In this document: positions 1-14,501 of the stretch, piece after piece
Numbering within the stretch: position 1 is the stretch's first letter
How the letters are laid out: every line of letters starts with the position of its first letter
From: Adineta vaga
Taxonomy: Eukaryota; Animalia; Rotifera
Assembly (NCBI GenBank): GCA_021613535.1
Contig: CP075494.1
Span: forward strand, 16,492,001-16,556,000
Length of the DNA stretch: 64,000 bases
Direction: 5' to 3'
The notes under the pieces: model-generated
Seen by the model: the letters and a program-made list of their open reading frames with translations, nothing else
Database searches by the model: none
Told to the model about the DNA's origin: nothing
Position numbers and translations under genes: made by a program

Positions 1-2484
1 GACACTACGAATTTCAACAATTAATGTAACACGTTGATTTTGATATTGACAATTATTTCCATATGTACTTGGTGGACACATACATTTCCATGTTAAACCA
101 TTTTTCCATACAGTTCTTATCATTATTCCACGATGACATAAATTATTAGAATTAGAATTTAATAATAAAGATTGTTTTTCTATTCCTAAATGACCAATAA
201 GAAAAACACCAGCTGTTTTAATATATGTTAATCGTTCAAGATGATTTTCAATCATCAGTATATTTTTATTAGAAGAATTTTGACGTCCCGATGATAAAAT
301 CAATTGAAGTTTATCGTCTATATAAGAATCACAGTGTCGAATTGTCTCTATATTAGTACATTCATCAGAATTCCAACATCGATAACGATTCCGTTTCTCT
401 AATGAATATTTTAATCGACAAAATTCTTGTTCATCAGTTGCTCCTATACAATCGATTATATTATTATTTATATATTCAATAGATAGACAAAATAATTCAT
501 GCGTTAATGGTGATATACACGAATGATGATTTAATGGACATTTAAATAAAAGATTATTACAATCTAATTCATCTTCTCCTTTTGGACAATTCCATACAAA
601 ATTACAACGAGTATAATGATTATTACATGGCCATTCTTCACAATTAGTTTCATCACTTTGATTATGACCATCGATTAAAATTGGTATCATATCTTCAATA
701 CCATCACAAAGAACTTTAAATACGAGATGATTTTGTAAATAATATTGAGTGGAATGTAATTCATCTGAACTATCTGAACAATCACTTATTTTATCATTAA
801 TCAGAAATTTATTTATACATTTATTTTCATTTAAACACTTGAAACGACAAGTTTTAATATCATTAAGTAAACAACTATTATCATACATTTCATCGTCACG
901 AAGTGGACAATCTATTCTACCATCTAATAGACGACTTATTGATATACATTTAGAAAAAAATAAACATTGATATAATAATAAATCATGTGAACAATTCATT
1001 AATGATAATGGACAACGAATTGAAAAATATTTACGAATTATTTCATATGTTTTATTCCAAGTTTGAGAAATAGATGACACATGACGAAATTCTTTGTTAA
1101 AATCTACACATGTACGTCCTAGAATTACAATGATTGTGGCATTCATAAATGGACATAATTTTGAATTAAAACATATATATAATGGTGGATGAAATAATGC
1201 TTCGGAATTCATACGACTTATTTGATAGAGAAAATAGATATGATTAAATAGAACAGGTGTTAAAGGGAACACAAATAAATATTTTGGACAATCAATTTCT
1301 GCTGAATTAATCCATGAAAAGAATTCAAAATCACTTTCACATATGATTGAATCTTCTTGTTCGATAGAATGTTGTAAACCTGTTAGACAAAACATTGATT
1401 CTTGACAAAATCTTGGTAATGGTTCTCCATATTTAGGATATTGAATATATTTATAACGATTATTTTGACATTTATGAAATGCATCAACACATTGTCCATC
1501 TCCACATGAAAATAATTGTAATTGATCTCGTCGTGGATAACATGTTGTTTCTTCACATCGAAATGCTAAATCTATTGAACATTCAGTTGATGTAGTTTTT
1601 GTTCCCAATTCATCAGTTCCATCGATACAATCTGGATTTAATGGATCATCATAAAAAAATTCGATCGGTATACATTGACCATTGTAACAACGATATTCGT
1701 TCATATTGCATTGATTTGCTTCTAGTTGCCAACATTCTTCTTCATCTTCACCTTGAAGACAATCTTGTTTTCCATCACATATTTCACGCCAATCAAGACA
1801 AAGATTTTGTGATCCAAGATTACATTCTAAATAAATAAAACATGCAGGAGGAGAAGAAGCTCCAGTAAAGTAAGGAGGTCTATTTATTGTTTCGATATAA
1901 TCAATCAATGAAAAATTTTGAGCTTTTATCATCATTAATTGATCAGACAATGATATTAATCCAAATGAATATTGACAATAATATCCAAACCAAGGTGGTG
2001 TACAATTATAATAGATTAATTCTCTACCTAATTTATCTGGAGATATTTCAACAGAATTATTCTCAAGAAATACTTGATAATTTTCAATCACATCAATCGA
2101 AGCAGACCAACTCAATAATTGTTCTGTTGTAACACTTTCTTCTTTTAAATCAAAAAATGTATAATACTTGTGACCAAATTGTGATGGGTCAAAATATTGA
2201 GAGTCAAAGATGAAATCTGTATTGTCTGGTCTAAAACAGTATGTTATTATTTCATCAACAGAACTAAATAGATCATAAAACTTTTGAGCTCGATCAAGAA
2301 ATTGATAGTATAAACAATCATAATCCAAAGGAAAATTGTTTACGTGATTTAGTTCCGAAGAATAAGTGTGAAATAAATTTATTCCATTATGAGTTAAATA
2401 TCCGGAAGTATGTTCCATGTAGTGCAATAGCAATGATAGAATAAACATACTACTAGTAATTGTGGAACACATTGGTATCAACAT
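1..2484 (-). CDS. LDL-receptor class A/EGF repeat protein, N-terminal part of an LDLa-EGF GPCR paralogue (runs off the left window edge)
   Basis: Not in the ORF track, consistent with no stop before the window edge. Segments translated by hand from ATG 2484 share one frame: MLIPMCSTITSSMFILSLLL..., YNCTPPWFGYYCQY, CLDWREICDGKQDCLQGEDE, ...GNNCQYQNQRVTLIVEIRSV at position 1. Colinear with the 24234 protein (CLDWREICDGKIDC; YGDRCQYQNQRISL). Confidence 0.85.
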   Translation of the reverse strand, partial: MLIPMCSTITSSMFILSLLLHYMEHTSGYLTHNGINLFHTYSSELNHVNNFPLDYDCLYYQFLDRAQKFYDLFSSVDEIITYCFRPDNTDFIFDSQYFDPSQFGHKYYTFFDLKEESVTTEQLLSWSASIDVIENYQVFLENNSVEISPDKLGRELIYYNCTPPWFGYYCQYSFGLISLSDQLMMIKAQNFSLIDYIETINRPPYFTGASSPPACFIYLECNLGSQNLCLDWREICDGKQDCLQGEDEEECWQLEANQCNMNEYRCYNGQCIPIEFFYDDPLNPDCIDGTDELGTKTTSTECSIDLAFRCEETTCYPRRDQLQLFSCGDGQCVDAFHKCQNNRYKYIQYPKYGEPLPRFCQESMFCLTGLQHSIEQEDSIICESDFEFFSWINSAEIDCPKYLFVFPLTPVLFNHIYFLYQISRMNSEALFHPPLYICFNSKLCPFMNATIIVILGRTCVDFNKEFRHVSSISQTWNKTYEIIRKYFSIRCPLSLMNCSHDLLLYQCLFFSKCISISRLLDGRIDCPLRDDEMYDNSCLLNDIKTCRFKCLNENKCINKFLINDKISDCSDSSDELHSTQYYLQNHLVFKVLCDGIEDMIPILIDGHNQSDETNCEEWPCNNHYTRCNFVWNCPKGEDELDCNNLLFKCPLNHHSCISPLTHELFCLSIEYINNNIIDCIGATDEQEFCRLKYSLEKRNRYRCWNSDECTNIETIRHCDSYIDDKLQLILSSGRQNSSNKNILMIENHLERLTYIKTAGVFLIGHLGIEKQSLLLNSNSNNLCHRGIMIRTVWKNGLTWKCMCPPSTYGNNCQYQNQRVTLIVEIRSV

Positions 2485-3930
2485 TAATATTACAATGTAG
2501 AGAACTAGACGAAGTTTGTTCTTGTCATATATATTTGTAATGTTATCTACCATCTGTTACAACGATTTTGCTTATTATGTTGACAATCAGTCAATCAATA
2601 AAGTTTTAGACTTTTTATTTATCATATATCATAAATTTAATTTTTTACTATGGATCAGAACCTCAAGCAGACCAAGCTAAGCCTGTCTATCTAGTTTTTC
2701 CTATTATACCATAATGTTATATCATAAATCGAATATTTTCAAGGAAAAATATGCGGATGAATTTACTTTCAATGTTTATAATGAACTTGTATGCATTACA
2801 CTCCTACGTCAGAATGAAGAGTAAAAGATATTCATGAATAGTCAAGTCTCTTACTATTATAAAGAGTATACGGAAGCAAGCTCTTATACACATAACTATG
2901 ACTTGCTCATTAATACCCCTATGTTGTCAAACTCACTTACGGCCAAGTACTTTTCCTTCTGCAGACTTTCTAATGAATCACGGTCAATCTTCTTTTAATG
3001 TCAATATGTCACTCCGCACTCTTGTCTAGCGAATCCATTTGATACGGACGTACGGGAAATTCAAGACTTTACAGCTGTGTTCCTATATTTTTAATTTCTT
3101 TTTGATCTAAAGTATGACTATATTGCACAAAAATGATTAACTTATATCACTATATTCTGTTTCTGATCTTTTTGCAACGTAAATCCACAGCATTGAATGA
3201 AATCTTGTATCTTATGAATCCGCTGTTCCTTGTAACCGGTCGTTTCTTAGTCAGCAATTACATCTTGTCAATTATAAGCGATTTTTTGAGCGACAACGAA
3301 TAAAAATACCTTCAACAGCTAGAAAATATAGCATACAAAAACTGTCCTCTGTAACGAATCATTTCAAATATTTTCTCAGATTTTTACATTAGAATGTTTC
3401 TACTATGATCATCCTTTCGAATTGCAAGGAAGCATTTGATTATCATGAACTCACATAATCAATTTGCCAGCGATCTTTGTCATTATGATATTATCATAAG
3501 AATCAGACGAGCTCATACAGGCAGGCCAGGTCGAGTGGAAAATATGATAGGCGCAGGCAGGCTGCGCAGGATATAGACCTGTTATGAGCATGCCGGGCCT
3601 GCAAAATCATGACCTCTTTGAACCTTTGTTAAGTACACTTTTCATGAAACCATACTAGGTTTTGTAAAGAATCGAAAGGTTCACTATAGGGCTTGTCCAA
3701 ACGTAACGTTGTGACATTTTTGACATATTTTCATAGGATTTTCTCGAGCACCATAAATGCTAGAAGGTTCATTTAAATGTTGTTAGACACAACTCATTAA
3801 GCTCTACCAACGTTAGAAAAATCAAGAGTTGTGATACAAGTATCGTGCCTCTACAATGGTTTTATGGTCGCGTAACACCGTGACATAAAAGGACCCTAAA
3901 TTTCTAGTACGCTTATTTCCTTCTCCCGTT

Positions 3931-3997
3931 TTGAGGGTGTGGGTGTGGGTAGGTGTGACTCTTATTGCATCTTCATCCACACCCATCCTTACGATGA
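3931..3997. repeat. Telomere-hexamer-like inverted repeat element
   Basis: TTGAGGGTGTGGGTGTGGGTAGGTGTGA...CATCCACACCCATCCTTACGATGA, about 135 nt downstream of the ABCB stop. Confidence 0.7.
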
Positions 3998-4131
3998 CAA
4001 TTTAACATTCCAATGTGCAACAATCTCTGTCAGTCAGATAACAAGATGATGATTGAAAAAAAGAGTTTTTTTTATGAATTAAAATATCTACAACAAATCA
4101 GTATGAGTTGTTTCTTCACTCACACAGTCAT

Positions 4132-7100
4132 TTATATACAAGTCTTTAGTTTTTCGTGTATCATTCGATAGTAACGTCCACCATGTGCTAGTAGTTCTTC
4201 ATGAGTTCCTTGTTCAACAATCATTCCATCGTGTAAAACGCAAATCATATCTGCTTTTTGAATTGTTGATAAACGATGGGCAATTGTAATCGACGTTCGA
4301 TTTTGTTGAGCACGATCGAGTGCGTCTTGAACTAATTTTTCACTTTCAGTATCCAAAGCACTTGTGGCTAAAGGAAAATTTATCACATGAACTATACGCG
4401 CAAATTTTGTTCACCTATACCTTCGTCGAGAAGTAAGACTTTTGGATTTCGAAGCAATGCTCTTGCGATAGCTACAAATGGAACAAATCGATGATTAAAA
4501 GAAATATTTCACTCAATTTTATTTTACCAATTCGTTGTTTTTGACCACCAGATAACTGGACACCTTTCGCACCGCACATTGTCTCGTATCCCTTTGAATA
4601 GAGAAAAAAGAGAATAACGATGAAGAAATGAAATGAATGGTAATATACATGAGGAAGATTTTGAATAAAATCATGAATATTCGCACTTGTAGCTGCTTGA
4701 ATGATTTCAACAAGTGAAATATCCGTTCGACTATTATCACCATAAGCAATATTTTCACAAATTGTCATATCAAATAGAATTGGTTCTTGCGAAACAATAC
4801 TAACTAAAACAAATAATTGTAAAATCTATAGGAAATAACAGATTCTTCTTACTTTGTGATCGATACCATTGAAGATCAAGACTTCGAATATCTTTCGAGT
4901 CGACCAACTATAACATAGAAGAACAAAATCTATTAAAATTCACTTGAAAAAAAAAGATATTTACCAAACGACCAGCGTTTGTATCATAAAATCGTTCAAT
5001 CAATTGAGTTATGGTCGATTTTCCACAACCAGATGTACCTAAAGATAATAATAATAAACAATTCGTAATAGAATTATATCGTTACATACCAACGAGTGCA
5101 ATCTTTTGTCCTATAACAAAGAAAAAATATCATTAATGGATATGAATAAGAAGAAAACTTACCAGATTTAATATTTAATTTAAAATTTTTGAGAATCTTT
5201 GATTCTGGTCGAGTTGGGTAAACAAAACTAACATCGTCGAATTCAAATTGTCCTGTAAAATTCGACTAAAAACGGACACAGATTATTTTGGATAGTCTAT
5301 CCAAACTCACAATTCTTTCGCCCGTATTTGATTCATTATCAATCAATGGTTTCCGATTGATTAATTCGAATATTTTCTTAGCACCTTCGATTGCTCTTCC
5401 ATAATCCGGAGATCTATAAGATAAAATATGTTTTACTCTACATCTAAATCGAATCATTGAATTAACGTACAACATTAAAGTTTGAGAGACGAGATCGGTA
5501 ATATTGGCAACAGAATTATAAACCCTAAAAGAAAATCATTTCAATCATTGATTGACTGAAAAAATTTCATCTTACATGTACATATCTTCGAATGAAATCA
5601 TAGCTTTATGAACTAAAGAACTACTTAATGCAAGAAGAGCTGCCGAAGCGAAATTTGACGATGTAATTGATATTGAAGCACATAATGCCGAAAGATGAGA
5701 TCGTTTCACTTTTGATCTATAGAGGAAAACTTCGTTTTTTCTTTGTTTAAAAATCGAACAAAAAATAATTACTGATAAATAGTGTCAAGAAGATGAGAAT
5801 ATTCATCATAAAAATATGTTTCTTTGGCTAATTGAACTACAGTTCGAATATTTTGAATAGTTTCCATAGTTATCTATAATATAAAACATTGTCCATGTTA
5901 TACACATTGTTCAATTATGTTCAAACCTTTCCCGCATTGTCAACATATGGTTTATCTTTATGTTCAAATGCTGCTTCTACTCGCATTTGAAAATACGCAC
6001 CAAGTATAACTACAGGTATGAATGCCATCATCATCAAAGTTAATTGCCAAGAAAAAATAAATCCAATAAAAAGACCCATTCCCAATGATATAAATGTTTG
6101 ACAAACAAAACCAAAATGAACACCACTGGCACCTTGAACAGCCGATGCTTCTGTTGCTAAATGTGTACATAATGCACCTGTGCTATGCTTTGCGTCATCA
6201 AAATAACTCATATCTTGGCGCAGAATAGCTCGAAAAGCTTTCGATCGCAGACGTTTAGTCAAAATTTCACCCGAATAAGCAAACATATAACTCTAGAAAA
6301 AAAACGAGATATATGTCAAAACAAAATTCGATCGCTCTGTGGTTTACTTGAAGTATATGAAATACGAATGCGACAATTCCTAAACCAACGAAGAGTAAAG
6401 TATACATTAAAATGTGTTGATTTATAACGTCTTTGTCACATTCTTGATATAACTATTAAAGATTTATAGAGAATATTTTCAGCTAATTGAACATTAATTA
6501 CTTACCACAGTCATTTTTGTTCGGATTATAGCAAATGATGGTTGTATTGCTCCAGTAAACAAAGCTGCAATACATCCGATGATAATCAATATCCATTCAG
6601 TTTGATTTATTCGTAATATACTGATTATGATATTTGTATTCTTCTTCTAAAATAATCAAACTTTATCATAATATTTCTAATTCGTTTCATTACCTTTTCT
6701 TCAACATTCACAGTTGATATCGATGAATTTGCAATCACATCTAATTGTACATCATGAGTTTTACCACCCAAATCATTAGACGAAAGAATTTGTGTCGATT
6801 CTTTTTCTTCACTCTGAGGTAAAGTTTGTTGTTGAACAAGGTTGAAATATACACCTCGATCTTTCATCAACGAATTATGATCACCATCTTCAATGATTTG
6901 TCCTTTTTGTAAGACGATAATTCTATCAGCATTATAAATTGTCGATAAACGATGAGCGATGATCAACGTTGTTCGACCTATGCGAATATAACATTGATTT
7001 TAAGTTCAGAAAACGACTGATTAGATTTACCTTGAGCAGCATGATCTAAAGCGTCCTGAACTATCTTTTCACTTTCATTATCAAGTGCACTGGTAGCTAT

Positions 7101-9427
7101 AATAGAAATGGAAAAACAAAATTACACGACTGACAATTCGAAGATAAATTGTACCTTCATCAAGAAGTAAAATTTTCGGATTTCGAATGAGTGCTCGCGC
7201 AATAGCTATAAATAGAATATAAAGGAAATTAATAAATAGTATATGATGAGGTATATTTTTACTAACCAATTCTTTGTTTTTGCCCACCAGATAATGCAGT
7301 TCCATGTTCACCTACTTGGGTATCATATTTCTACATTGAATATAAATCCAAAAACTTAAACAAATGAAAATTTTTCCGAAAACTTACATCAGGCAAAGTC
7401 ATAATGAAATCATGTGCATTCGCCATCTTTGCTGCTTGAATAATTTCCGCTTCGGTTGCTGAATCACATCCCAATAAAATATTTTGACGAATAGTTGTAT
7501 GAAATAGAACTGGTTCCTGACTAACAACACCGATATGTTCTCGTAACCATACCAAATTATATTCATTAATGTCTTTGTCATCAATTGATATTGAACCGGA
7601 ATCGAGTTCATAAAATCGTTGTAATAATTGTACACATGTAGATTTTCCTGAGCCCGAACAACCAACAAGAGCAACTGTTTGACTAGATTGAACATCGAAT
7701 GATAGATTCGTAAGAATGGGAACATCTTGTCGTGATGGATAAGAAAAATTTACATTAGAAAAACGTATATGACCAATAAGATCATCCGTTGTTTTACTAA
7801 TCATTGAATCGTTAGTAATCTTCGATGGCTAGAAATGATACTATTAATTTTTTTGAAAATAAAAAAAATAAATTTACTTCATCAATAACTTTCTGTATTC
7901 GATAAGCAGCGACTTGAGCTTGAATTAAAGCTTGAAATTGTGGTGTAATATGTTGTAAAGTAAATACAGCATTGAAAATCGTTAGAAAAACCTGAAAAGA
8001 ATCTATTTGTCAGTATTTTCCTGATCTTCTCTTCATACATACAGTATAAACAATACCAATCGTATAATTTTCTTCTCGAATCAATTTTGCGCCATACCAA
8101 CATCCTTTGAATAAAAATTCAATAAGAAAAACAAATTTCAATTTAACCAATGTTACCTAATCCAAATAAACTATATACGAACAATAATTGTATAGCCATT
8201 GTGATGCCATTAATGATATTTTTCTTAATTGCACTTTTCTTTGCTTTATCAAGAGATTGTTCATAGCTAAATATAGAAATGAAAATTGATTTTTCTCTTC
8301 AAAATATTTTCTCTACAAACCGCTGTATTTCTTTTTCTTGTCCATTGTATGATAAAACAGTACGAATTGAACTAATAGCTTCCTCTGCAATGATTCCAGC
8401 ATTTCCATATGCTTTTAATTCAATCGCACTGAATTTTCTAATGATCTAATGAGAAATAAATATCACACATTTATTACAATAAAAAACAAATCTATTTTAC
8501 CATAGATGTGATTATGAATGACGTCAAGATAATCGGTAATGTGGATAATATGACTAATGCTAATTTCCATCCTTTAACAAAACCTAAACCATCGAAAATT
8601 TTCTTGATGAAAATATACAAAAAAATAACTTACTGATGACAATAGAACTGATGAGAGTTGCAAATGTGTGAACTAATGCACCGAATTTATCTCCGATTCC
8701 ATCGCGTATTTTCATAATATCATCAGTTAATAATAAATTAAGTTCACCAGTTTTATGAGTATCAAAATAAACAATATCTTTTTTCATGATTGATTGAAAT
8801 AGAATTTGACGAATTGTTCGAACTTGTCTTTCAGCTGTTATATTAAAAAATGTCACTCGGAAATAACAACAAAGAAATCCAATACAACTAATGATAATTA
8901 AATATATTGTTTGTTCACTCGTTTGATTTGTGAATGCTATATTAGTATGAGTGAAATTAGTTTCAGTCAAATTACATAATCTAAATTATTGTTTTAGATT
9001 AAAAACAATTTTATGTGAAAAAAAAAGTGTTCCTACGAGATTGATTTGTAAAAATTATTTGATGTTAATGTGATTCCTGGTGGACAATATTGTTGAGTAA
9101 GAGAAGTAAGATTAAATGGACATAGAGCAGTTTTTTGATTGATGAATGAATCAATTGAATTACCAAAAATAACCAAAAATAAAGGTTCAACAAGACCAAA
9201 TATCGTCGAACTGATAAATGCAAAGAGTAAATAAAGAGAATCAGTCAAAGTGGCATATCGAAACTGGAAGAGAGAGAGAAATGAAAATATATAATAGAAT
9301 AAATACAATTGTTTATTACCAAATGTAGAATGCTAACAGTTTGAATTGATTGTCTCTTCATACGATACCATTGGGCAATCATCGATTGTTTTTCATTTTT
9401 CTCCTTTGATACCATAATATTCGTCAT
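4132..9427 (-). CDS. ABCB1/P-glycoprotein-like full ABC exporter (TMD-NBD-TMD-NBD), many short introns
   Basis: Exon fragments give [29 protein letters not shown]1: [40 protein letters not shown]2: [29 protein letters not shown]2: [40 protein letters not shown] introns separate the fragments. The start is approximate because an acceptor-like site lies just upstream. Confidence 0.93.
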
Positions 9428-9856
9428 TTGTATTACAAGTTTCTAGAAACAAAATAAATTCAGAATATCAAAAATAGTTCTTTTATATTTGCGGGTTTTT
9501 CTTCTGTATTGTATAGGAATGAAATATAATGTTATGGAAGAAGTGACACAGCGTCTTTATATCTTTTCTCTTTCTATATAGTCTCGTCCTATTGAACATA
9601 AAACGCGTGATTGTCAAACAGAACGGGTTAAAATGTGACTGTTCTCTTTCAATGCACATGACGCTCATATTATATTTCTTTTTCTCCCACTCATAACCAC
9701 AACATCGATAACGATACATTATATAGATATGTGGGTTAGATCGACATTTGTATCGTATGATTCATGGGGAATTTCCACAATAACAATATTGTTCATATTC
9801 CTTTCACAAATATAAACGAGTATCGTATAATGTATAGGTGATGTGCCGATCAACAC

Positions 9857-9963
9857 CATGACGTCATGTGTATCCGTTTACGATACCTGGTACCTTTTTC
9901 CCTCAATCATGACTCATGTGTGTTTGTACAAGGTGTATCGAGGTCATTCTTTCGCTATTTAAA
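9857..9963. promoter_or_regulatory. Candidate bidirectional promoter with CRE, AP-1 and TATA-like elements
   Basis: CATGACGTCATG palindrome at 9857-9868 (TGACGTCA core), CATGACTCATG at 9908-9918 (TGACTCA core) and TATTTAAA at about 9956, within the ~580-nt gap between divergent start codons. Confidence 0.45.
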
Positions 9964-10008
9964 TAACCGATGATTTTTCATTAGCATCAACATTTCGATC
10001 AAACAATA

Positions 10009-11910
10009 ATGGAATTCAATCCCAGTCGCTATTATCTATTAGAATGTAGTAGAAAGCAAAGCATTGCTGATTTAAAATATGGCCGAGTGAATTGTCTTCG
10101 ACTACGAAATCAATCTCTACAAGATATGATTGATTTATCCTATGGATTAGGGACACCATTTAACGTCCATGAAAAAAATCGATCGAAATCATTAATTCGT
10201 AAAGTTACACCAGCAAAAGATCATGCACACGAAGAATCCGCCAATGGTAATGTCTATTTATCATATCATACTGAAAATCTCTCGCATTTAAAACCGCCAA
10301 ATTTCGTTGCACTATTTTGTGAACGAAAAGATCGAAATAATCAAGGTTATACTTTATTATCCACAATCGATGATATTAAAGAATTGTTAACCGAATCAGA
10401 AATTGAAATTTTATCAAGTGACAAGTTTACAGTTTATATTGAAGATTCACTGAACATCGATGGGATCAAAGCAGCTTTACCAACGAAAGTTCCTGTTTTT
10501 CGTGATAACAAAATGTTTTTTGATAATTTATTTATGGTTCCGGATGCAGATGCCGTCGATGCATTTGAAAAACTCAAACAAATTATCATTCAAGTTGAAA
10601 TGAAGATTCTATTAGAACCTGGAGATCTTTTAATTTTCAATAATTTCACATGTGTACATGGAAGAAGTGAATTTCATCCGAAATTCGATGGTCAAGATCG
10701 ATGTTTACATCGTTTACTTATTCTCGACGAATTCAATACTTCATCACCAGTTATTGAATTCGAAAAATATCCAGTCGTCATGAACAACAATATCTTAGAA
10801 ACGAACAATCAATTAACAATGAATTTAGCAAAAAAAAGTCTCAATAATACTGAAATCTTCATTCAAAAGATGAAAAAAGTTTGTATATTTGAAGTTGAAG
10901 GTGGATTTGATAAACATCACGCACCACACCGTCGTGAAATCGTCTTGATAAAAGATGCATTGAAAGCAAGAAATATTTATTCCGAAGTTGTATTCTACAA
11001 AGACGAAGATGCATATATTTATGATTATGTTGCATCAAATTTCGACTTTTGTTTAGTACGAATCAATCCAGAATTTTATCCAAGTTATACAAAAAGCAAA
11101 TTTTTCAAACTATTGACAAAATTTGAATCGAAAATCATTTGTCTTCCAACGGCAAATTCGATTGTTAATTTGGATAGTAAATCAATCATTTATTATATTC
11201 GAAATACGTTGTTTGGTATGGCAGATACGAATTTGTATACAAATATCAATGATTTTAAGAAGAATTTTCAATGTTATGAACAACGAGTCATCAAAGCAGA
11301 TCATAATGCAGAAGGACGAGGTGTTTTTCTTGTATCAAATCATTTGGAAGAAGAACCGGAGATAAAAACAAATCGGAAAAGTCATTATTTGAGAATTATT
11401 GAAGCTGCAACAAATAAGGAAGAAATCATGACCAAAGAAAACTTTGCTAAAGTTTTATTTAAGGAGAATTCTCAAATTCTTGATCAGAAATATCTTCAGA
11501 AAATTAAAGAAATGGAAATTCGTATAATGTTAATCGAAAAAAAGATTATTTGGATCATTGTTTTCATTCCGAAAAGTGAAGAATGGTTGGCGAATGGCGA
11601 TGGAATCTATTATGAACCATCTAAATGGCCAAATCTTTGTAAACAAATGACGAATTGGTTACCTCAATTAGAGAAATATCTTCAAACAAAAAATTGCAAA
11701 CTTCCATTCTTATGGAGTGCAGACTTTATCATGCAAGACGATGATCATCATTATGATAGTTCACAAGATATTTGTGAATATGCTGACAAAGCTCAATTTG
11801 TTTTATCTGAAATTAATTGTTCGTGTCTTGGCTTTCGGCAAAATTCATCACAACCAAATGTGGCATTGGATATCGCAGAAGCCATTTTCAATATGTCCAC
11901 TGTAATATAA
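10009..11910 (+). CDS. Fusion of a TauD/clavaminate-synthase-like Fe(II)/2OG dioxygenase and a Cj0069-like ATP-grasp domain, intronless
   Basis: N-terminal half: LGTP..E..LIRKVTP...ESANGNVYLSYHTE (H-x-E) and LEPGDLLIFNNFTCVHGRSEFHPKFDGQDRCLHR (distal His, 2OG-binding Arg). C-terminal half: IFEVEGGFDK, RINP, RVIKADHNAEGRGVFLV, DQKYLQKIKEMEIR, LPFLWSADFI, LSEINCSCLGF. Confidence 0.85.
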   Translation: MEFNPSRYYLLECSRKQSIADLKYGRVNCLRLRNQSLQDMIDLSYGLGTPFNVHEKNRSKSLIRKVTPAKDHAHEESANGNVYLSYHTENLSHLKPPNFVALFCERKDRNNQGYTLLSTIDDIKELLTESEIEILSSDKFTVYIEDSLNIDGIKAALPTKVPVFRDNKMFFDNLFMVPDADAVDAFEKLKQIIIQVEMKILLEPGDLLIFNNFTCVHGRSEFHPKFDGQDRCLHRLLILDEFNTSSPVIEFEKYPVVMNNNILETNNQLTMNLAKKSLNNTEIFIQKMKKVCIFEVEGGFDKHHAPHRREIVLIKDALKARNIYSEVVFYKDEDAYIYDYVASNFDFCLVRINPEFYPSYTKSKFFKLLTKFESKIICLPTANSIVNLDSKSIIYYIRNTLFGMADTNLYTNINDFKKNFQCYEQRVIKADHNAEGRGVFLVSNHLEEEPEIKTNRKSHYLRIIEAATNKEEIMTKENFAKVLFKENSQILDQKYLQKIKEMEIRIMLIEKKIIWIIVFIPKSEEWLANGDGIYYEPSKWPNLCKQMTNWLPQLEKYLQTKNCKLPFLWSADFIMQDDDHHYDSSQDICEYADKAQFVLSEINCSCLGFRQNSSQPNVALDIAEAIFNMSTVI

Positions 11911-13411
11911 AACTGAGTTTTTCTACGCACATGTAAAAATGTACACAGCGATTCATCTGGATTTTTCTGCGTGGATGACTTGTCTTTTTTTGTTAATTGA
12001 ATAAATCACAGCATAAAATTAGTTCTTGAGGAAAAAGACATAGTTTTAGTTGAACATAGATATCAATGTATATGTGATTTATAATTAAGCAAGATCAAAA
12101 TAAATCTATTTCTAACAATTTCTATTTTCACAAGGAGAACATTGGAAATACTCTATAAATGCATCAAATTAAAACTACATCTAGTCCTAATATATATTCA
12201 AAGTCGTATAAGGCATCGCATGGCTTCGCGAGGAAAAACGACGTTCGTATGTTGTTGTTTTTTTCAACAAAATATATTTATCATGTGAAAAAATATACTT
12301 CATTACCTGTACAAACATCGTTTATATGCGTACAAAAGTATATTTTTCGACGTAGTAAATACACGTTTTGTTGGAAAAAACAACATAAGAACGATCGTTT
12401 CTTATCGATTTTATCTATCTGGATATTAGTCAAATTTCGTTGAGATGATCATTTGTAAGAATATGTCCATAAGATAGGAAAATTTCAGAGATAAAAATAG
12501 ACACAATTCTGTTTTTTATTCTACCTAAATCTTGAGGTTATGTGAGGTGATAAAACGGACTCAAAAAAATCCCTTATACTATCATCCACCGTTGTTTAGG
12601 TTTTATATTTCGACAACACGAACCCATGGAATGTCTAAAAAACGTTACATATGTGAACTATACTAAAATGTACTTTTGAATTGATCATGACTTGACCAAT
12701 TCTTTGGTATTTGATTGTCGTCTTCATAATATTCTGCTGAAATTTTATTGAATAAATTCGTGTTCTCTAAAACATAGTTTGCGAGTAACACTAATATTAA
12801 TCATAGCCTGTCGTTCTTATTCAAATGCTAATACCATCGAGATTTTTCTTAATTTTTCATTACTATTAAATACATCTTGCGAAGATAAATAGATCTATGA
12901 TGAATAGATGACTTAGGCATTTTGCGTTTTAATCTTGTAACTCAATTCATGAAAATAAAAAAGTGATTCTCTCGGACATTTATTAAAAATAGTTTTATCA
13001 GGTTTTTTTTATTATCATTATCGACGAAATATTATATAAGACGAAAAGAAAGAGATGAGATTTCAAGGTTATTTAATGTGTGATGTAACCAGTACAACAC
13101 AATAATAATAAAAAGCTGAGGTTGTTGTGTAACTGTTTCGTTTTCTGTTAATAAAAAAAAGGTAGGTTTATTTTTACCTTTTCAACGTCGATACAGAGTA
13201 GTGTTATACAACAGCATCTTATGTAACGAATGTTTTTTTGAATAGTTTTCGTACTTTGATTGATAAAGGTGGACTTTTCTTTCTATGTTAATGTCAAATA
13301 CAAGATTATGCTAAATAAATATCTCTTCCTACAAGTATATATATACACAGGTAAATCGTTTGATATATTTATCTGTTCATTTACTCGTCGATTTCAAAAG
13401 AAGAAATAATT

Positions 13412-14037
13412 ATGCAATCAATAACGATAGTCGTTTGTGTGTCAATAATTTTATATCAAGCAACTCTTATTAAAAGTATAGTGTATATAAATATTATTTA
13501 TTTATAAAAATTTAATTAATTAATTTAGCACAAACTACTGACATTGTTCAAACTGCCATTAACAATGGTAATTTTAAAACACTTGTTGCAGCATTACAAG
13601 CTGCTGATCTTGTCGCAACATTGAAAGGCAATGGTCCATTTACTGTATTTGCACCTACTGATACCGCATTTGGCAAACTACCAGCGGGTACTGTTGATGA
13701 TTTACTCAAACCAGAAAATAAAGGAAAATTAGCTGGAATCTTAAAGTATCATGTTATCAATGGTAAAAGTTTAACATCAGCACAAATCAATGCAATGACT
13801 TTACCAGTAAAAGTAGAAATGTTAGAAGGTAGTACAGTTACTGTCAGTAAAGATGGAAATAATCTTAAAGTAAATGATGCTACAGTTATTATACCTGATG
13901 TTATAGCTACCAATGGGATTATTCATGTGATTGATACAGTTCTTATGCCTCCTGCATCAAGTTCTGCAACATCTATTTTTCTTAATCAATCAATTTTCTT
14001 TATTTTATTTTTGACAATTTTATTTTCTTTATTTTAA
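13412..14037 (+). CDS. Single-domain fasciclin (FAS1) protein with signal peptide and C-terminal hydrophobic (GPI-like) tail
   Basis: Exon 1 (13412-13475) encodes MQSITIVVCVSIILYQATLIK. A phase-1 intron (13476-13528) is followed by DIVQTAINNGNFKTLVAALQAADLVATLKGNGPFTVFAPTDTAF...ILKYHV...DVIATNGIIHVIDTVLMP and the tail ASSSATSIFLNQSIFFILFLTILFSLF. Confidence 0.92.
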
Positions 14038-14081
14038 TAAAAGAAAATATTTTATTCTAATTAATAGAATGTACTATCAAC

Positions 14082-14501
14082 CATCTTGAGGGTGGGTGTG
14101 GATAATGATTCTTTATTTTAACCCACATCCCCATCGTGTTTTATTACAAAAAATATTTTCATTAAGATAAATAGAAAAAAGAAACTTACTTAAGTATGGG
14201 TGTGGATGATAGATAGATGTAGTACTCACACCCACATCCAGCCTGCATAATTACTCTTTAAGGTTCTCTTTCGTTTCAGCTGTCGTACATTTTGCCTTGA
14301 AATATAAATAACCAATCTATTTTTGTTGATGTCGATGTTGAAATCCAAGAAATGATATAGAAATTTTCGATGATATACTTTTCTAATCTATTTCTTCATA
14401 CAACCAAAGAAATAATTCTCATCTTCAATTCATTCATCAACATGTACTGACCATAAGCATTTCATCAATTGAGGGTGGGTGTGATATATTTATTCCTCAA
14501 T
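14082..14501. repeat. Cluster of three telomere-hexamer-like inverted repeat elements
   Basis: 14082 CATCTTGAGGGTGGGTGTG...ACCCACATCCCC; 14197 TGGGTGTGGATG...CTCACACCCACATCCA; about 14467 ATTGAGGGTGGGTGTGA...CCTCAAT. Confidence 0.65.

Follow-up and report, generated by a model that had tools for sequence, protein, structure and literature searches.

Clavaminate-synthase-like (CSL) Fe(II)/2-oxoglutarate (2OG) oxygenases, such as CAS1 and AsnO, have been described at the residue level: logo position P18 holds an Arg for the C5-carboxylate of 2OG and P19 one that binds the substrate carboxylate in every CSL group, and roles have been supported for the residues at P2 (alpha-amine), P6, P15, P18 and P19 (PMC6224419). 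Cj0069/DUF6815 proteins are stand-alone polypeptides of ~340 aa from Campylobacterota, Bacteroidota, Cyanobacteriota and others, as well as from marine protist transcriptomes, and a scan of 185,579 bacterial and archaeal species genomes placed the family in 496 of them, Campylobacter and Helicobacter included. The literature that we searched did not mention DUF6815, and Cj0069 appeared there only as an antigen or in screens with no function given, in keeping with an earlier, sequence-only assessment of this locus (the original prediction), which had described Cj0069 as lacking an assigned function. Here we analyse a gene of the bdelloid rotifer Adineta vaga that joins these two kinds of protein in a single polypeptide. 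It lies at positions 10009..11910 (+) of a 64,000-nucleotide stretch of DNA (the window), which corresponds to positions 16492001-16556000 of a 16.93-Mb contig.

On balance, we favour the reading that this single-exon gene is functional, was acquired horizontally and encodes two enzymes, with amino-acid oxidation and ATP-dependent ligation brought together by one fusion that selection has since kept. Judged by residue conservation and predicted fold, the most economical mechanism would be amino-acid oxidation coupled to ATP-dependent amide ligation. The N-terminal domain would act on a polar or basic L-amino acid, oxidising (most likely hydroxylating) its side chain, and the C-terminal domain would use ATP to join a carboxylate to an amine via an acyl-phosphate intermediate. 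The product of this two-step route, which would be independent of non-ribosomal peptide synthetases (NRPSs), would be a modified amino-acid amide or a pseudo-dipeptide. The fusion itself would have arisen a single time, either outside animals or among giant viruses and protists, and would have been maintained under purifying selection from then on.

Domain architecture of the fusion protein

The coding sequence is complete and comprises a single exon on the + strand, with an ATG at 10009, 633 codons and a TAA stop at 11908-11910; upstream of the ATG the frame is open for 8 codons only. This open reading frame (ORF), together with matches in Pfam and NCBIfam, confirmed that a CSL oxygenase is fused to a Cj0069 domain, and all of the motifs originally quoted were recovered in the translation (YHTE, VHGR, FHPKFDGQDRCLHR, FEVEGGFDK, RVIK..GRGV, WSADFI and EINCSC). 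A word-index search brought the number of full-length fusion proteins to seven: the window's protein, three proteins from ENA assemblies (P0002-P0004, 74-79% identity), two from Logan assemblies (P0005 and P0006, 55% identity) and the most divergent member, P0009, from a JGI metagenome (42-45% identity).

Residues 1-245 (10009..10743, +) form the CSL oxygenase domain, as indicated by Pfam, NCBIfam, the PDB and Foldseek. The Pfam TauD profile matched at 44.8 bits (cut-off 27), whereas NCBIfam profiles for individual enzymes scored far below their equivalog cut-offs: ClavSyn_CS1 reached 98 bits over residues 42-241 (cut-off 450), and GntD and VioC gave sub-threshold matches within residues 42-245 (81 bits against 345 and 62 bits against 419, respectively). 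The domain is therefore a member of the family and not an equivalog of a characterised enzyme. A sequence search of the PDB retrieved CAS3 (7.7e-20), CAS1 (2e-19) and AsnO (3e-17), followed by KDO1, NapI, OrfP, VioC and CmnC, in each case via the N-terminal half only. When the full-length model was used for a Foldseek search, AsnO (2og7, 2.5e-17) and CAS (7e-16) ranked ahead of KDO1, NapI, OrfP and VioC, with target TM-scores of 0.66-0.69, and the double-stranded beta-helix fold of the predicted model agrees with that of the solved CSL enzymes.

Alignment to CAS1 and AsnO positioned the catalytic residues. The first two iron ligands correspond to H87-T88-E89 (YHTE; 10267..10275, +), which aligns with the H-T-E of CAS1 and with AsnO; H87 is invariant in the seven fusion proteins and E89 is present in six. 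H217 (VHGR), as the third iron ligand, R231, for the C5-carboxylate of 2OG, and R235, for the substrate alpha-carboxylate, lie at 10657..10713 (+), and all three are invariant among the seven proteins (alignment A1). The two Arg residues fall within FHPKFDGQDRCLHR, which aligns with the H...DGxDRWLxR segment of CAS1 and AsnO. On the substrate side, E55 aligns with AsnO Glu125 (P2), N79 with AsnO Asn146 (P6), D172 with AsnO Asp241 and R58 with CAS1 Arg115 (P3); E55 and N79 would sit close to the alpha-amine and the carboxylate of the amino acid. The native AsnO numbering and the side-chain-pocket role of Asp241 are in part what we take the AsnO structure paper to report. A two-residue ambiguity in an alignment gap means that P2 could be either E55 or N57, of which E55 is invariant in the fusion clade and N57 is not; D172 is also invariant in the seven proteins, while N79 is replaced by Tyr in P0009. 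With its triad and its 2OG- and substrate-binding residues conserved, the N-terminal domain seems equipped to oxidise substrates in which a free alpha-amino-acid head is combined with a side chain that is polar or basic.

The remainder of the protein, residues 290-633 (10876..11907, +), was assigned to a Cj0069/DUF6815 domain with an ATP-grasp fold on the basis of NCBIfam, AlphaFold2 (AF2), Foldseek and ESM Atlas comparisons. The NCBIfam profile Cj0069_fam (NF033816) covered residues 290-624 and model positions 1-331 of 334 with a score that only marginally exceeds its cut-off (152.5 bits against 150), and Pfam DUF6815 (PF20668) scored 63.5 bits (cut-off 28). An AF2 model of this domain had a mean predicted local distance difference test score (pLDDT) of 90.7 and a predicted TM-score (pTM) of 0.89. 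Foldseek matched this model to ArgX (3vpb, ArgX/LysX, 2e-13), then DdlB, RimK, DcsG, GshB and synapsin, with a probability of 1.00; at least 500 PDB entries matched at E <= 0.001, and all of the 50 that were listed are ATP-grasp enzymes or synapsins. The nearest ESM Atlas structure was a Cj0069 cluster (TM-score 0.82). The proposal that the C-terminal half is an ATP-grasp domain thus stands up to both confident modelling and structural comparison. Profile comparisons of the Cj0069 family were borderline against RimK (5zct, E 0.03), GshB (1gsa, 0.08) and TTLL7 (0.13), over the E-x-R / Gly-Gly segment, and stand-alone Cj0069 members also match Pfam RimK and GSH-S_ATP.

An alignment of 29 sequences (A2), comprising 22 stand-alone relatives and the fusion proteins, with the window's protein among them, contained 14 invariant columns (R..P, K, Y, K, GxG, E, P..W..D, ExN..C), all of which are kept in the window's protein. 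By analogy with ATP-grasp enzymes, K429 (RVIK) and the G436-R-G438-V loop (11293..11322, +), invariant in the 29 sequences, are a putative ATP phosphate-binding Lys and flexible loop. Profile alignment with RimK 5zct and GshB 1gsa placed E503-I-R505 (11515..11523, +), which is invariant in A2, at the D/E-x-R strand motif of these enzymes, and D572 (WSADFI) and E601-x-N603 (EINCSC), at 11722..11817 (+) and invariant in A2 and A3, are putative Mg2+/ATP ligands. E-x-N is the canonical metal site of ATP-grasp enzymes. Members of the fusion clade carry an extra insert of ~15 residues between WSADFI and EINCSC. Pfam DUF6815 has two distinct matches in each of two metagenome proteins, P0029 (585 aa) and P0032 (699 aa), a pattern that suggests Cj0069-type domains arranged in tandem or duplicated in part.

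The two domains are separated by an Asn-rich segment (residues 246-289; 10744..10875, +) that had been described as a linker. Its composition is as stated, but the full-length AlphaFold model predicts it to be structured rather than floppy, with a pLDDT of 80-94 and helices at 249-253 and 267-276; it is also the least constrained part of the protein (dN/dS 0.14-0.46). The model as a whole has a pLDDT of 92.4 and a pTM of 0.87, and this high pTM suggests a defined arrangement of both domains. A docking prediction between the N part (1-284) and the C part (285-633), run without alignment or controls, scored 0.00 and is evidence neither for nor against such an arrangement.

The same comparisons bear on the order in which the two reactions might occur. 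If the ligase acted first, it would make a side-chain-linked conjugate, of the gamma-glutamyl or omega-amide type, with a free alpha-amino-acid head, which the oxygenase would then modify as clavaminate synthase does. The closest sequence matches of the N-terminal domain, CAS1 and CAS3, act on elaborated arginine derivatives, R58 aligns with a CAS1 residue at P3, and ArgX/LysX and GshB, which have the closest ATP-grasp folds, form amides that lie on a side chain or extend a peptide. E55, however, corresponds to the Glu that binds the alpha-amine in AsnO and KDO1, a position at which CAS1 has Leu, so that a simple free amino acid fits better, and we consider the ligase-first order unlikely. The substrate could also be a protein or peptide, with the ATP-grasp domain adding an amino acid to a target carboxylate in the manner of RimK, tubulin tyrosine ligase (TTL) or LysX and the oxygenase hydroxylating the same target. 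The structures and profiles closest to the C-terminal domain do include RimK, which tails ribosomal protein S6, ArgX/LysX, which act on the carrier protein LysW, and TTLL7. Against this, the solved structures of AsnO, CAS, KDO1, NapI, OrfP, VioC and CmnC contain a bound free amino acid or small amino-acid derivative, the N-terminal domain conserves the residues that hold the free alpha-carboxylate and alpha-amine in place, and no conserved carrier or target gene lies beside the fusion copies that were examined. Modification of a protein or peptide is thus improbable. In the combination that we prefer, amino-acid oxidation plus ATP-dependent ligation, the steps may follow either order, and that of the original prediction (hydroxylation, then ligation) is an inference.

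Occurrence and descent of the fusion

Of the 1319 matches that HMMER gave against 1.84 billion cluster representatives, a single one, P0002, which represents the cluster of the window's protein, extends over both halves; the others that were listed are each confined to one half. When viral contigs and genome contigs were searched with the fusion alignment, no fusion was recovered, and metagenome contigs yielded single-domain relatives only. A word-index search with the C-terminal domain alone gave no match, a result that reflects the word index and its length window and not absence. Longer relatives of either domain were considered as further fusions and rejected: those of the N-terminal domain carry DUF4350/GIFT-like or NRPS C-A-T modules in place of an ATP-grasp domain, and those of Cj0069 have tandem DUF6815 domains or unannotated N termini in place of an oxygenase. 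With one two-half cluster in 1.84e9 representatives, the earlier expectation that this architecture is neither common nor characterised was upheld, and the oxygenase-Cj0069 combination, seen in these searches in no more than a few related animal contigs and a single contig that is probably from a giant virus, is genuinely rare and undescribed, although built from known kinds of enzyme.

To follow the history of the fusion, separate phylogenies were constructed for its halves, as had been suggested. Fusion proteins were monophyletic in the tree of the C-terminal domain (support 100, stem 2.47) and in that of the N-terminal domain (support 98, stem 1.34), and both trees share the topology (P0009,((P0005,P0006),(P0003,(window,P0002,P0004)))). 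This agreement points to one fusion event, followed by co-evolution of the two halves. A comparison of the window with the relative's contig L002 gave dN/dS values of 0.052 for the N-terminal domain, 0.14 for the linker and 0.121 for the C-terminal domain at a dS of ~1.3-1.5, and other pairs, although saturated, were consistent; by this codon-level measure, both halves are under purifying selection. The P0006 homologue was assembled in four sequencing runs as a 2.14-2.2-kb contig with untranslated regions (UTRs) of ~80 nt, one of these contigs being bounded by Illumina adapters, and its 3' UTR is similar in length to the distance from stop codon to AATAAA in the window. The contig looks like a transcript, which would mean that the gene is expressed in a relative.

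The nearest stand-alone relatives of the two domains are at most 37% identical and come from unnamed metagenomes, MMETSP/EukProt protist transcriptomes and bacteria; at this distance, and with almost no taxonomy attached, they do not allow a donor lineage to be named. Further clues come from P0009, whose contig (L001; JGI 3300048588, Ga0498926_0005917, 1-14248) is gene-dense, has no introns and a GC content of 35%, and encodes HtrL_YibB+GT_PLOD, AlkB-like, ADP-ribosylglycohydrolase and AAA_33 proteins along with many orphan ORFs. The nearest Atlas clusters to the neighbouring HtrL_YibB + GT_PLOD protein are from Nucleocytoviricota, and this glycosyltransferase has a 62%-identical relative on a 1.6-Mb contig labelled 'uncultured virus', with relatives on contigs of 0.3-1.6 Mb. 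The mimivirus-type early promoter motif AAAATTGA was not found on L001, and PHROGs matches of its proteins were uninformative. It is the relatives of the HtrL_YibB+GT_PLOD gene, then, that indicate that L001 probably derives from a giant virus. The lack of introns, the distance to stand-alone relatives and the giant-virus-like contig of P0009 together support a foreign origin of the fusion gene.

Genomic setting and weighing of the evidence

A single full copy of the fusion was found in the Adineta vaga genome (100.8 Mb, six chromosome-scale contigs), the chromosome-scale assembly of which has been reported (PMC11258130). The gene lies ~0.4 Mb from the end of its contig and its GC content (31%) matches that of its flanks (~30% across the window). 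A TATA-like element was read ~45 nt 5' of the ATG, and AATAAA, a candidate polyadenylation signal, follows the stop codon by 90 nt (12000..12005, +). Upstream, a multi-exon ABCB-type transporter with ABC_membrane and ABC_tran exons (4132..9427, -) is arranged head-to-head with the fusion gene. Block-by-block alignment showed that this order recurs in an independently assembled 276-kb contig of a relative (L002). Downstream of the gene, the window has a fasciclin-domain exon (13621-14037, +; Pfam 6e-32) where L002 has actin exons, so synteny between the two holds on the ABCB side only. Other fusion copies sit in different neighbourhoods, next to Piezo, cation-ATPase, GPCR (G-protein-coupled receptor) or F-box exons, and the ABCB link is therefore not universal.

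These data speak to whether the gene belongs to the animal at all. It might have entered the assembly as a contaminant, or be a foreign insert in decay and without function, given that it is intronless, was not found in most sequenced animals and lies near a chromosome end, and that truncated copies occur elsewhere. Yet, as anticipated in the original prediction, the gene is flanked by animal genes that contain introns, within a contig of 16.9 Mb and with a GC content like that of its flanks, and the conserved ABCB junction in a second assembly is independent evidence that it is linked to animal DNA. Decay is also at odds with seven members that have intact ORFs and dN/dS values of 0.05-0.16, and with the transcript-like contigs in a relative. 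Contamination or decay is accordingly highly improbable.

The transporter offers another interpretation, in which the locus is a xenobiotic or toxin module: the fusion protein would oxidise and conjugate a foreign amino-acid-like compound that ABCB then exports, combining phases I, II and III of detoxification. The head-to-head order is kept in both the window and L002, where the fusion proteins share ~79% identity. However, the neighbourhoods of P0003 and P0004 have no ABC transporter, nor does that of the giant-virus-like P0009 copy, and synteny between two closely related species is weak evidence of a functional link, which makes a detoxification module very unlikely. ABCB export could also feature in an extended form of our preferred reading, in which a complete NRPS-independent pathway in one polypeptide was built in the giant-virus/protist gene pool, captured by bdelloids and now yields a hydroxylated conjugate; as a whole, this scenario is tentative and somewhat doubtful.

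Several results weigh against a two-step oxygenase-ligase. P0004 has Lys at the position of the Glu iron ligand (residue 89; HTK for HTE). This protein (L087:10001-11920) is otherwise intact and conserved and its contig is labelled 5x, so HTK is either a sequencing error or the mark of an oxygenase-dead paralogue that retains its ligase half. The TauD domain alone is present in two additional copies, P0007 (388 aa) and P0008 (365 aa). P0007 (L086:711-1877) is cut off at ~residue 384, the missing part of the C-terminal domain was not found downstream on contig L086, and this copy may be a decaying paralogue. The roles given to the ATP-grasp residues are putative and follow from motif position, not structural superposition, and no biochemical data for any Cj0069/DUF6815 protein were found in the literature. 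In addition, the stem of the fusion clade in the C-domain tree is very long, at 2.47 substitutions/site, and its members have E-W-L-A-N-G-D-G in place of the family loop F-S-A-T-L-x-S-G-A. The replaced loop and long stem mean that the substrate of the fused domain may differ from that of the Cj0069 family.

Gene neighbourhoods in bacteria did not favour a shared pathway either: among the best 80 bacterial Cj0069 loci (+-8 kb), none had a CSL oxygenase nearby, and conservation of neighbours did not extend past close relatives. The idea that a conserved operon became the fusion was rejected for the bacteria sampled, and the fusion gains no independent 'Rosetta stone' support from these loci. Considering this, the long branch and the altered substrate-loop motif, it is uncertain how far the fusion informs on the function of bacterial Cj0069 proteins.

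TauD-type oxygenases are also encoded in three regions of contig C3. The only other genome match of the fusion protein was an ORF with an HxD-type TauD domain (L005); this was considered as a fusion paralogue and rejected as unrelated, at 27-31% identity. It is an intronless ORF of 306 aa from a GTG (open frame 334 aa) at C3 13611389-13614877 (L005/L103), located just 3' of a BAHD-type 'Transferase family' fragment and adjoining a 350-aa ORF in which a GDSL-lipase-like N-terminal motif was read by eye. The region may be another small foreign enzyme cluster. At C3 16432589-16439287 (L110:590-7288, +) and C3 2734937-2739829 (L111:1938-6830, +), two giant intronless ORFs (2232 and 1630 aa, respectively) specify hybrid megasynthases with the domain order adenylation-T-KS-AT-(beta-lactamase-like)-T-TauD; a separate A-T ORF of 625 aa precedes the shorter one. 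The genes are of a foreign NRPS/polyketide synthase (PKS) type, with a terminal TauD oxygenase in place of a thioesterase.

Significance and relation to known systems

Were the proposed function correct, it would provide the first testable function, and a biochemical handle, for the Cj0069/DUF6815 family, with the oxygenase partner narrowing the likely substrate class to amino acids. In bdelloid rotifers, a link has been drawn between foreign biosynthetic genes and defence against pathogens, and the fusion would add a type that is neither NRPS nor PKS to the repertoire of such genes in these animals. If the protein does make a conjugate, its hydroxylated product would be a small natural product, or a signalling or defence metabolite, in an animal. 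The position of the closest outgroup on a giant-virus-like contig makes the gene a candidate for transfer between giant viruses and an animal, and compact oxygenase-ligase fusions would be attractive as biocatalysts for hydroxylated dipeptides.

Compared with CSL oxygenases (CAS1/CAS3, AsnO, KDO1, NapI, OrfP, VioC and CmnC), the N-terminal domain has the same fold and HxE...H triad and likewise features a 2OG Arg, a substrate-carboxylate Arg four residues on, an alpha-amine Glu and a side-chain-pocket Asp. It differs in being 17-24% identical in Foldseek structural alignments, ~80 residues shorter at the N terminus (245 aa versus roughly 325) and joined to a second enzyme. The C-terminal domain shares the full-length profile match and the 14 invariant residues of stand-alone Cj0069 proteins, but is half of a 633-aa fusion and is set apart by its very long branch, its replaced loop and its insert of ~15 residues. 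With RimK, LysX-ArgX, GshB and Ddl it has in common the three-subdomain ATP-grasp fold (Foldseek E 2e-13 to 1e-10, probability 1.0) as well as the Lys, Gly-rich loop, E-x-R and E-x-N, whereas identity to these enzymes is 10-16% and the substrate-binding loop is unlike those of RimK and GshB.

The NRPS/PKS clusters of bdelloid rotifers (Nowell et al. 2024, PMC11258130, a paper that does not mention TauD or ATP-grasp genes) are foreign and of a biosynthetic type, as is the fusion gene; the latter, intronless and near a chromosome end in a genome with many such genes, is neither an NRPS nor a PKS. The same oxygenase-ligase logic is seen in fusions of ~518 aa from Myxococcota, which were retrieved from the ESM Atlas as a lead only (feature score 0.78) and are uncharacterised. 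These pair a 2OG-FeII_Oxy_3 (prolyl-hydroxylase-type) oxygenase with a RimK-type ligase, so both halves belong to families other than those of the rotifer protein. Homology of the fusion events is therefore excluded, and the two architectures are analogous.

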